Counted from the stretch's first letter, positions 30,301 to 33,300 are shown. The stretch is DNA of 64,000 nt from Entomortierella parvispora E1425 (GCA_020891255.1 BQFW01000015.1:1736001-1800000); one strand, 5' to 3'. Program-made: numbers and translations. The notes: generated by a model not told the origin, from the letters alone.

Positions 30301-33300
30301 GTCGGTATCGAGTTCATGGATCTGTACAGTCATTTGATCCCCGTCTATGATATTGAACCTCTGGAGAAGATTTCGGATGCGTACTTGGATCAGTACCTTT
30401 GGTATGAGGCCGATAAACGCCACCTCTTCCCCAGCTGGATCAAGCCCGGTGATACCGAACCCCCACCACTGCTTGTTTACAAGTGGTGCCAGGGCATCAA
30501 CAACTTGACCGACATTTGGGACACGAACGAGGGCGAATGTGTGGTCATGATGGAGACCAAGTTCAGCAAGTTGGCAGAAAAGGTCGACTTGACACTCTTG
30601 AACAGATTGTTGCGACTTATTCTGGACCACAACATCGCAGATTACATGACCGCCAAGAACAACGTGGCTCTCAACTACAAGGATATGAACCACGTCAACG
30701 CGTATGGTCTTATTCGAGGTCTTCAGTTCGCCAGTTTCATCTACCAGTACTATGGTTTGATTCTTGATCTCTTGGTTCTCGGTCTTCAGCGTGCCAGTGA
30801 GATGGCTGGTCCTCCTCAGATGCCAAATGACTTCTTGCAGTTCCGCGACGTTGTTACTGAGGTCCGTCATCCTATTCGTCTCTACTCTCGTTACATTGAC
30901 CGATTCCATATGGTCCTTCGATTCACTGCGGATGAGGCTAGAGATTTGATTCAGCGGTACTTGACCGAGCATCCCGATCCCAACAACGAGAATGTGGTTG
31001 GATACAGGAACAGAAAATGCTGGGTAAGTTGAAGCTTCTTGCCATTTTTCGGACTGTTTTGTCCCCAAAAATGATTATTAACCTATCTCATCTCTATCTT
31101 TGAAAATTAAATAGCCACGCGACAGCCGAATGCGCTTGATCAAGCACGATGTCAACTTGGGTCGTGCCGTCTTCTGGGACATGAAGAACCGTCTTCCTCG
31201 CAGTTTGACGACCATCGAGTGGGACGACACTTATGTATCTGTGTACAGCAAGGATAACCCGAACTTGCTCTTTGCCATGTGCGGTTTCGAGGTCCGTATC
31301 TTGCCCAAGGTCCGCAACCAGGACGAGCAGTTTTCCATGCGCGATGGAGTCTGGAACCTTATCAACGAGCAGACCAAGGAGCGTACAGCGCAGGCTTACC
31401 TCCGCGTGGATGATGAGTCCATTCAAAAGTTCCACAACCGTGTCCGTCAGATTTTGATGGCTTCCGGTTCAACGACCTTCTCCAAGATCATCAACAAGTG
31501 GAACTCTTGCTTGATTGGTTTGATGACTTACTACCGCGAGGCCGTCGTCCACACTCGCGAACTGTTGGATCTTTTGGTCAAGTGCGAGAACAAGATTCAG
31601 ACTCGTGTCAAGATTGGATTGAACTCCAAGATGCCTTCCAGATTCCCCCCCACCGTGTTCTTCACTCCCAAGGAGTTGGGTGGTCTTGGCATGTTGTCCA
31701 TGGGTCACGTTCTTATCCCCCAGTCGGATCTCAGATGGTCTAAGCAAACCGATGCTGGAATCACTCATTTCCGCAGCGGTATGTCCCACGAGCAGGATCA
31801 GCTTATTCCCAACTTGTTCCGTTACTTGCAGCCTTGGGAGTCTGAATTCATTGACTCTCAGCGTGTCTGGTCCGAGTATGCCCTCAAGCGTCAGGAAGCC
31901 AATGCTCAGAACCGTCGTTTGACTTTGGAGGATCTTGAGGACTCTTGGGACCGGGGTATTCCTCGTATCAACAGTTTGTTCCAGAAGGATCGCCATACTC
32001 TCGCCTACGATAAGGGTTGGCGTGTCCGTTCTGAGTTCAAGCAGTACCAGATCTTGAAGGTGAACGCCTTCGCTTGGACGAACGCTCGCCACGATGGTAA
32101 ATTGTGGCAGCTTAACAACTACCGTACAGATATGATACAGGCTCTTGGAGGAGTCGAGGGTATTCTGGAGCACACCTTGTTCAAGGGAACTTACTTCCCT
32201 ACCTGGGAGGGTCTGTTCTGGGAGAAGGCCTGTTTCTCTGCTGATACTCACCTGCTTCGTGCTGATGGCACCGCAGTTGCTGCACCTGACATTGTTCGTG
32301 GTGACAAGCTTCTTGGAGACGACGGTACTCCTCGTACGGTCCTGGATATTGTCAATGGTGACGACTATCTTTATGAGATCAAGGTTGAAGGTGGTGTTAA
32401 GCCCCTTGTTGTGACCCATAATCATATCATGTGCTTCAAGACTTCATCTCATCAGAGCATGGTTTGGGTCAATGAGCAGACTGCCTACAACGTCTCTTCT
32501 CTCGACTCGTCTTTCAAGATCGTCTCCAAGGAATTCAGCGTTCAAGAATATTCTTCAAAGGAGAAGGCCGAGGTCGCCGCATCGGAGTACGCGAAGGCTC
32601 TTGACGGCGTTTCCAAGGATAAGCTGTACGAAATGACCGTGGACGACTACCTTCTTCTTCCCGAGTCAACTCGCCAGCTTCTTCTTTTCTACCGCGCGTC
32701 GGCATCGGATGCTCACGAGACCAAGGTTGACTTTGGCGGCGAATGGCGTCTCTCATCTATTGCTTCCGTCGAGCGTAAGTCTGTTCTGGAGCCCTACTTT
32801 GGTTTCCTTGTCGATGGAAACCAGCGTTTCCTTCGTGATGATCTCCTGGTTGTTCACAACTCTGGATTCGAAGAATCTATGAAGTAAGTACTACTGACAT
32901 ATTGGACCATATCAAATGCCTTTGCTGTTCAAAACTGACCTATTTCAATTATTTGTTTATTGCAACAACTAGGTACAAGAAGCTGACCAACGCTCAGAGA
33001 TCTGGTTTGAACCAAATTCCTAACCGTCGTTTCACACTGTGGTGGAGTCCTACCATCAAGTACGTTTGCATTGCCTGTTTTTTCGCGAATCTTGCTAAAT
33101 GCGTGAAATGTTGGTTTCCTAACCTTGTTTCTTTTTATCATCTTTCATTTTAGCCGTGCGAACGTTTATGTCGGTTTCCAGGTGCAATTGGATTTGACTG
33201 GTATTTTCATGCACGGAAAGATCCCTACGCTCAAGATTTCTCTTATTCAGATCTTCCGCGCCCATTTGTGGCAGAAGATTCACGAGAGTTTGACCATGGA

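Follow-up and report, generated by a model that had tools for sequence, protein, structure and literature searches.

A PRP8 mini-intein of Entomortierella parvispora with a nested AP2-type domain, probably a relic of homing

The PRP8 gene of Entomortierella parvispora E1425 lies within a stretch of 64,000 nucleotides (GCA_020891255.1, BQFW01000015.1:1736001-1800000), hereafter the window, and is interrupted at the canonical site a by a mini-intein of 210 amino acids (aa) that contains no nuclease. Directly after block B of the splicing (Hint) domain, this intein, referred to as the query, carries an insert which, to judge from family profiles and a structural model, is very probably an AP2-family domain. 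The original prediction, made from the sequence of the window, was of an AP2-like DNA-binding module retained after loss of the endonuclease, either with a function of its own or as a relic. The AP2 assignment has gained support, chiefly by way of relatives, and the relic is the option that fits best: the nuclease is gone, the putative DNA-binding sheet is eroded and the fold is predicted to be intact. We consider it probable that the module is a folded relic of AP2-guided homing, retained by virtue of its place within that of the Hint domain.

The insert and its position

The segment at 32456-32602 on the forward strand translates exactly to the 49 residues (SMVWV...YAKAL) in which the AP2 pattern was first noticed. 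The best matches of the intein in the PDB are the Cryptococcus PRP8 mini-inteins 6MX6, 6OWU and 6MWY (phmmer, E-value 2e-22), which align with query residues 1-69 and 132-210. Between these two blocks the query has 62 aa (residues 70-131) and the Cryptococcus intein (Cne) 24, an excess of 38 aa where ~40 had been estimated. In the structural study of the Cne PRP8 intein, the residues at this place were an unresolved linker or endonuclease remnant (PMC6805012). The parts of the module are as follows.

32450..32614, + strand: AP2-type module, residues 74-128
32456..32470, + strand: predicted strand 1, residues 76-80, SMVWV (E11-15 by DSSP on the AlphaFold2 model); Trp79 kept
32483..32503, + strand: predicted strand 2, residues 85-91, AYNVSSL; Arg87, Tyr89 and Trp90 replaced by Asn, Ser and Ser
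32519..32539, + strand: predicted strand 3, residues 97-103, IVSKEFS; Lys100 and Phe102 kept, Arg98 replaced by Val
32558..32614, + strand: predicted helix, residues 110-128; family motif K-E-x-A...A..F/Y...L kept

The nuclease has been lost, as had been supposed. No Hom_end or LAGLIDADG match was found in the 210-aa intein by Pfam at E-values up to 10, nor any other nuclease domain, and ~190 residues are absent in comparison with P0001 and other relatives. These nuclease-bearing relatives have their ~190 further residues at the scar (in a collapsed alignment [32] + [156] extra in P0001, the others being similar), and Pfam places a Hom_end domain at residues 339-405 of the P0001 intein.

The insert also stands where the original prediction had placed it, at the site of the extra DNA-recognition region (DRR) of PI-SceI. 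Query residue 66 aligns with PI-SceI residue 80, one residue past the block B histidine, and the AP2 module is thus the positional equivalent of the PI-SceI DRR. No sequence similarity between the family profile of the module and PI-SceI was detected in the PDB profile search described below. It is nevertheless plausible, with a moderate score in the model-based fold search as its sole support, that the yeast PI-SceI DRR is itself a diverged AP2 domain.

Evidence for an AP2-family domain

Taken alone, the query is a borderline case. Its matches to Pfam AP2 have E-values of 0.01-0.09 and score 13-17 bits where the cut-off is 33.3, and only profile positions 24-53 are covered, corresponding to the third strand and the helix; even so, AP2 tops the matches of the excised segment. 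Stronger evidence comes from its relatives. With HMMER, 3411 matches were obtained in an exhaustive search of 1.84 billion representatives, and the best 150 of them were analysed. In 110 of these the alignment begins at residue 1 and continues unbroken straight across the insert, reaching at least residue 140 (typically 155-168), and the same 110 then have ~200 extra residues ahead of the C-terminal Hint blocks. Their homologous insert segments were aligned (alignment A1). Pfam AP2 was matched independently by 16 of the 110 members at E < 0.01 (best 1e-9), and an integrase arm-binding family by three. When the A1 profile was compared with 177,635 PDB sequences, the top three matches were three different apicomplexan AP2 proteins: 3IGM (E-value 5.2e-6, profile positions 6-63 of 66), 6SY0 (2.3e-4) and TgAP2VIIb-2 (0.013). 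On these comparisons, membership of the AP2 family holds by transitivity through the family profile and not for the query sequence alone.

The models agree with the profiles. AlphaFold2 supplied with the A1 alignment predicts three antiparallel strands that form a sheet against which a C-terminal helix packs, with a mean predicted local distance difference test (pLDDT) score of 82.9; from the single sequence of the 210-aa intein the score is 36. The best Foldseek match of the module model in the PDB is the AP2 tandem of PfSIP2 (template modelling (TM) score 0.69, root-mean-square deviation 1.8 Å, probability 1.0), the E-value being only 0.12 for a domain of this small size. In a fold search of 48,161 chains the four best were all apicomplexan AP2 (ApiAP2) domains, with the PI-SceI DRR coming after them. 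A structure search of the Swiss-Prot part of AFDB returned no AP2/ERF match. The AP2-like β3-α pattern that had been read from the query is recovered by family profile, Pfam counts, model and fold searches.

Distribution of the module

The pattern common to the family is I/V-x-W, a turn, Y/W-x-V-x-W-F-D, a loop, K-x-F-S-V and S/T-K-E-E-A...A..F...L. Behind it stands an I-E-I-T-V-x-D-Y-L segment, which is present in all PRP8 inteins. Full-length members have the order Hint-N, AP2-like module, Hom_end/LAGLIDADG_3, Hint-C. Besides PRP8, their hosts include P-loop helicases/ATPases, MutS, PIF1, SNF2, a Top2-like site, an RBR/IBR zinc finger, an XRN-like GEGEHK site and a metallophosphatase. A search of viral model structures returned a Moumouvirus MutS first (E-value 9e-4, TM 0.69, 33% identity), followed by Klosneuvirus, CeV, Marseillevirus, Pithovirus and Fadolivirus proteins. 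A published network places PRP8 inteins in one cluster with viral inteins (PMC5784728), and these giant-virus matches are in agreement with it. From the structure matches and the types of extein, we infer that the metagenomic hosts are mostly giant-virus genes. The alignments mark the module as ancestral and widespread in the clade of PRP8 and giant-virus-like inteins and not as a peculiarity of the query.

Metagenome contigs were scanned for relatives both with exact peptides and with the A2 alignment, and neither scan gave any above 46% identity. A BLASTP search with region 368-577 of the 585-aa exon open reading frame (ORF) gave none above 51%, full-length Prp8 lying beyond the length window of that search. 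In the 50% clusters, full-length Prp8 proteins sit behind intein-less representatives.

Several nuclease-bearing PRP8 inteins contain two AP2-type units in tandem, an arrangement that recalls the tandem of PfSIP2. The units occupy residues 66-106 and 153-204 of P0001 (domain E-values with the A1 hidden Markov model 1.8e-8 and 3e-7; Pfam AP2 on unit 2, 0.0013) and residues 65-117 and 159-212 of P0017 (2.6e-8 and 4.3e-6). P0003-P0006 probably have them too, with perhaps three units in P0005 and P0006. The single-unit forms (the query, P0002, P0152 and the viral clade) look like the sheet of unit 1 joined to the helix of unit 2.

A further arrangement was met among the metagenomic P-loop ATPases, some of which carry two back-to-back inteins inside Walker A, separated by no spacer (..HN|C..) or by three extein residues (..HN|TGK|C..). 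These are P0011, P0021, P0023, P0036, P0058, P0105, P0124, P0141 and P0148.

Independent loss of module and nuclease

Twenty-five PRP8 site-a inteins were taken from the matches and aligned. Three kinds of loss were found.

Module absent, nuclease present: P0009, P0151
Module and nuclease absent: Cne-type (P0052), P0013, P0153
Nuclease absent, module present: the query intein, P0018

By this alignment, nuclease and module have been lost independently among the PRP8 lineages. When P0009 and P0151 are set against their close relative P0001, the AP2 module has been cleanly deleted and the LAGLIDADG domain retained. The accessory domain is therefore dispensable for keeping a nuclease-bearing intein.

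Erosion of the sheet and selection on the module

AP2 domains such as those of AtERF1 and the ApiAP2 factors contact DNA through their sheet. As a reference for the sheet of the query, ten PRP8 relatives with both nuclease and module were used, and candidate DNA-contact positions were chosen by their conservation among the inteins of the family and not by the crystal contacts of 3IGM. Six basic positions are conserved in the ten (74, 83, 87, 98, 100 and 105). The query retains only K100, the remaining five being H, Q, N, V and Q. At the six conserved aromatic positions (79, 86, 89, 90, 91 and 102) it retains W79, Y86 and F102, and positions 89 and 90 are both Ser. The net charge of the sheet is -1 in the query and +2 to +7 in seven of the ten relatives (range -2 to +7). 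For the module core, the net charge is -2 and the isoelectric point (pI) 4.9, against family medians of +2 and 9.1, placing the query in the lowest eighth.

The same contrast appears in mean identity, with the query sheet being about half as conserved as the Hint core.

N-terminal Hint part: query against six nuclease-bearing relatives 58%, among the relatives 56%
C-terminal Hint part: query against the six 69%, among the relatives 64%
AP2 sheet: query against the six 28%, among the relatives 53%

The helix of the query is better preserved, being 53-58% identical to the helices of the single-AP2 relatives P0002 and P0152. An artefact of paralogy, in which the query sheet would correspond to unit 2 of the tandem relatives, was considered and rejected, as the identity of the sheet to unit 2 (21-26%) does not exceed that to unit 1 (24-33%). 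The module of the query reads as one with an eroded binding surface and a preserved hydrophobic core. With all but one of the basic positions and half of the aromatic ones replaced, the earlier description of an apparently intact nucleic-acid-binding module is doubtful.

Selection was examined with Logan contigs from runs of the same species label over 31900-33000, that of run X3 being 2.9% diverged and those of X5 and X7 12-13%. All three span the entire intein without gap or indel. The X3 differences in the intein number at least 18, those listed being 15 synonymous and three non-synonymous, with a ratio of non-synonymous to synonymous polymorphism (pN/pS) of 0.06. Of the listed differences, five synonymous and one non-synonymous (N81D) lie within the module, giving a pN/pS of 0.054, compared with 0.064 for the other parts of the intein. 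The probability of at most one non-synonymous difference in six under neutrality is 0.002, for a small sample from one strain pair. Neither sign of neutral evolution, a dN/dS near 1 or indels, was seen. In these comparisons the module is seen to be under purifying selection of the same strength as the Hint core.

Relic or functional domain

A history that would account for these observations starts from a LAGLIDADG intein of the PI-SceI class (Hom_end_hint) in which an accessory domain of AP2 type, serving DNA recognition, was nested in the Hint domain directly after block B. By analogy with PI-SceI, the module of nuclease-bearing relatives would extend the DNA contacts past the LAGLIDADG core and aid in finding the empty allele. 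In the line leading to the query, the alignment shows that ~190 nuclease residues were deleted between LFYRAS and block F and that the AP2 module stayed. The sheet then lost the greater part of the basic and aromatic residues conserved in the family, and because of that loss DNA binding by the query module is probably weak or gone. The module most likely persists because it lies inside the Hint domain, so that splicing of an essential protein requires it to fold. From intein chemistry, a free 210-aa Hint+AP2 protein would be released at each splicing event; no function is indicated for it. A caveat to the reading of the sheet as eroded is that P0010, P0084 and P0012 keep their nucleases and also have diverged or acidic sheets.

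The released protein is the basis of the chief alternative, which was also raised in the original prediction: the module would have a retained or domesticated function, binding nucleic acid or another partner, and the excised Hint+AP2 protein, one per mature Prp8, would have its own role at the PRP8 locus or with an RNA or spliceosome component. The low pN/pS of the module, the absence of indels at 12-13% divergence, the preserved hydrophobic core and helix motif and the confidently predicted fold are what such a function would lead one to expect. However, the need to fold for the splicing of an essential protein predicts an identical signal of selection, and since selection on the module equals that on the Hint core, the folding requirement explains the data as well as domestication does. 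Furthermore, the loss of basic and aromatic sheet residues and the acidic pI speak against a binding function, and other PRP8 lineages have freely deleted the module. We therefore regard a domesticated function as unlikely and the folded relic of homing as the better account.

Two other explanations deny the module its AP2 identity or its fold. Were the insert a generic β3-α element, or an extension of the usual kind to the Hint domain or to a PI-SceI-type DRR, convergence or composition (Lys/Asn-rich segments resembling proteins of AT-rich apicomplexans) would account for its likeness to AP2. It is hard to reconcile this with bona fide AP2 domains at the top of both the PDB profile search, across almost the whole profile, and the fold search, or with the independent Pfam AP2 matches of 16 members. 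The matches in BFVD also include annotated HNH endonucleases, which are known carriers of AP2 domains. Such an origin is accordingly very improbable. Less credible still is a disordered, neutrally drifting linker remnant. The description of the equivalent place in the Cne intein and the want of a confident fold from a single sequence would suit it, but the alignment-based model is ordered (pLDDT 83), the hydrophobic pattern is conserved with more than 100 homologues, and the 5:1 ratio of synonymous to non-synonymous differences without indels is not that of neutral drift. The folded relic of AP2-guided homing remains the explanation we prefer.

The PRP8 locus and the intein

The intein and its host gene are laid out in the window as follows.

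27672..35807, + strand: PRP8 gene, several exons split by short introns (approximate extent, from the ORF list and Pfam on ORF pieces)
32231..32860, + strand: PRP8 site-a mini-intein, 210 aa, Cys1 to His209-Asn210 (translation, Pfam, PDB phmmer)
32231..32440, + strand: N-terminal Hint part, residues 1-70, blocks A and B (aligned to 6MX6 residues 5-73)
32414-32425, + strand: block B TxxH, T62-H-N-H65 (translation)
32624..32698, + strand: conserved segment behind the module, residues 132-156 (in all PRP8 inteins, Cne included)
32699..32755, + strand: scar of the lost LAGLIDADG nuclease, residues 157-175 (alignment with nuclease-bearing relatives)
32756..32860, + strand: C-terminal Hint part, residues 176-210, blocks F and G, ending VVHN (alignment)
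32861..32863, + strand: Ser +1 of the C-extein, SGFEESMK (translation)

The ORFs around the intein match PRO8NT, PROCN, RRM_4, U5_2-snRNA_bdg, U6-snRNA_bdg, PRP8_domainIV, JAB and PROCT in Pfam, and it is the U6-snRNA_bdg domain that the intein interrupts. The frame is open for 210 codons without interruption, and the flanks, GLFWEKA before and SGFEESMK after, are those of the canonical PRP8 site a. Pfam assigns the intein to Hom_end_hint (E-value 5.9e-18; query 1-125 against profile 1-146), and the sequence marks of a class 1 intein are present, namely Cys1, T62-H-N-H65 in block B, H209-N210 and Ser+1. Splicing would be expected of the intein, as its catalytic residues are intact, its host gene is essential and its pN/pS, given above, is low.

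Matches of the block B region to designer pentatricopeptide repeat proteins (5I9G and others) and to P0027, a repeat protein of 2391 aa matched in 17 stretches, with phmmer E-values down to 1.5e-8, were discarded as spurious, as they are due to a shared VVT(H/Y)N string of block B (window 32378-32440, residues 47-67).

Two further observations come from the Logan contigs. The intron just 3' of the intein-bearing exon (32886-32966) is replaced in the X5 and X7 contigs by unrelated sequence of 80-82 letters, around which exon and intein stay collinear. Run X5 also yields contigs of depth 2-3 in which the N-extein runs directly into the coding sequence for SGFEESMKY at 32229-32231; these represent PRP8 alleles without the intein, which probably belong to other organisms of the sample.

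Comparison with known systems

PRP8 inteins, mini-inteins, the DNA-recognition region of PI-SceI and the AP2 domains of HNH homing endonucleases are each known already. A link between inteins, or PI-SceI, and AP2 was not found in the literature searched, and 'unreported' is to be taken as provisional. What appears to be unrecorded is a large clade of LAGLIDADG inteins with an AP2-family domain nested in the Hint fold at the DRR position, together with the independent loss of module and nuclease in PRP8 lineages and the query as a module-only intermediate. Most Pfam AP2 matches in these inteins fall below the gathering score, and routine annotation would therefore miss them.

For AP2 evolution, the clade would be a new reservoir of AP2 domains that is both eukaryote- and virus-borne; for intein engineering, the query would offer a compact natural Hint+AP2 scaffold. 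The query also lends itself to deciding cleanly between folding and function as the reason why a nested accessory domain is retained. A bolder proposition, which we hold to be unlikely, is that the DRR of the whole PI-SceI, PRP8 and giant-virus LAGLIDADG clade is a true AP2 domain with the apicomplexan AP2 factors as its nearest solved relatives. If true, eukaryotic transcription factors of ApiAP2 type might have had their source in intein AP2 modules that circulate among giant viruses and protists, and nuclease-free inteins that retain AP2 would be snapshots of the module being freed from the nuclease.

The ApiAP2 domains (PF14_0633, 3IGM; PfSIP2, 6SY0; TgAP2VIIb-2) share with the module the β3-α topology, the spacing of Trp/Tyr, the Lys-x-Phe and the K-E-x-A helix. 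They are, however, domains of transcription factors, or in some cases found in mitoribosomes, whereas the query module is nested in an intein, is acidic and is without most of the basic residues of the sheet. PI-SceI, the VMA1 intein of Saccharomyces cerevisiae (1GPP/1LWS), differs from the query in bearing its nuclease.

HNH-AP2 homing endonucleases occur in phages, cyanobacteria and ciliates, according to PMC4117751, which cites Magnani 2004 and Wuitschick 2004. The original prediction had drawn a parallel with these enzymes, and it stands in so far as AP2 likewise serves a homing element; structural matches of the module to the HNH endonucleases of Klosneuvirus and phage AR9 were also obtained. 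The parallel does not extend to the nuclease, which in the relatives of the query is LAGLIDADG (Hom_end, LAGLIDADG_3) and not HNH; Pfam found no HNH domain in the query intein or in eight relatives scanned in full. The architecture differs as well, AP2 being fused end to end in the HNH enzymes and nested in the Hint domain in the inteins.

The closest comparison is with the mini-inteins of Cryptococcus neoformans (Cne) and C. gattii, which occupy the same site of the same gene (GLFWEKA|C...HN|SGFEES), have the same Hint core and are also free of a nuclease. The Cne intein has lost both module and nuclease, whereas the intein of E. parvispora has lost the nuclease alone.
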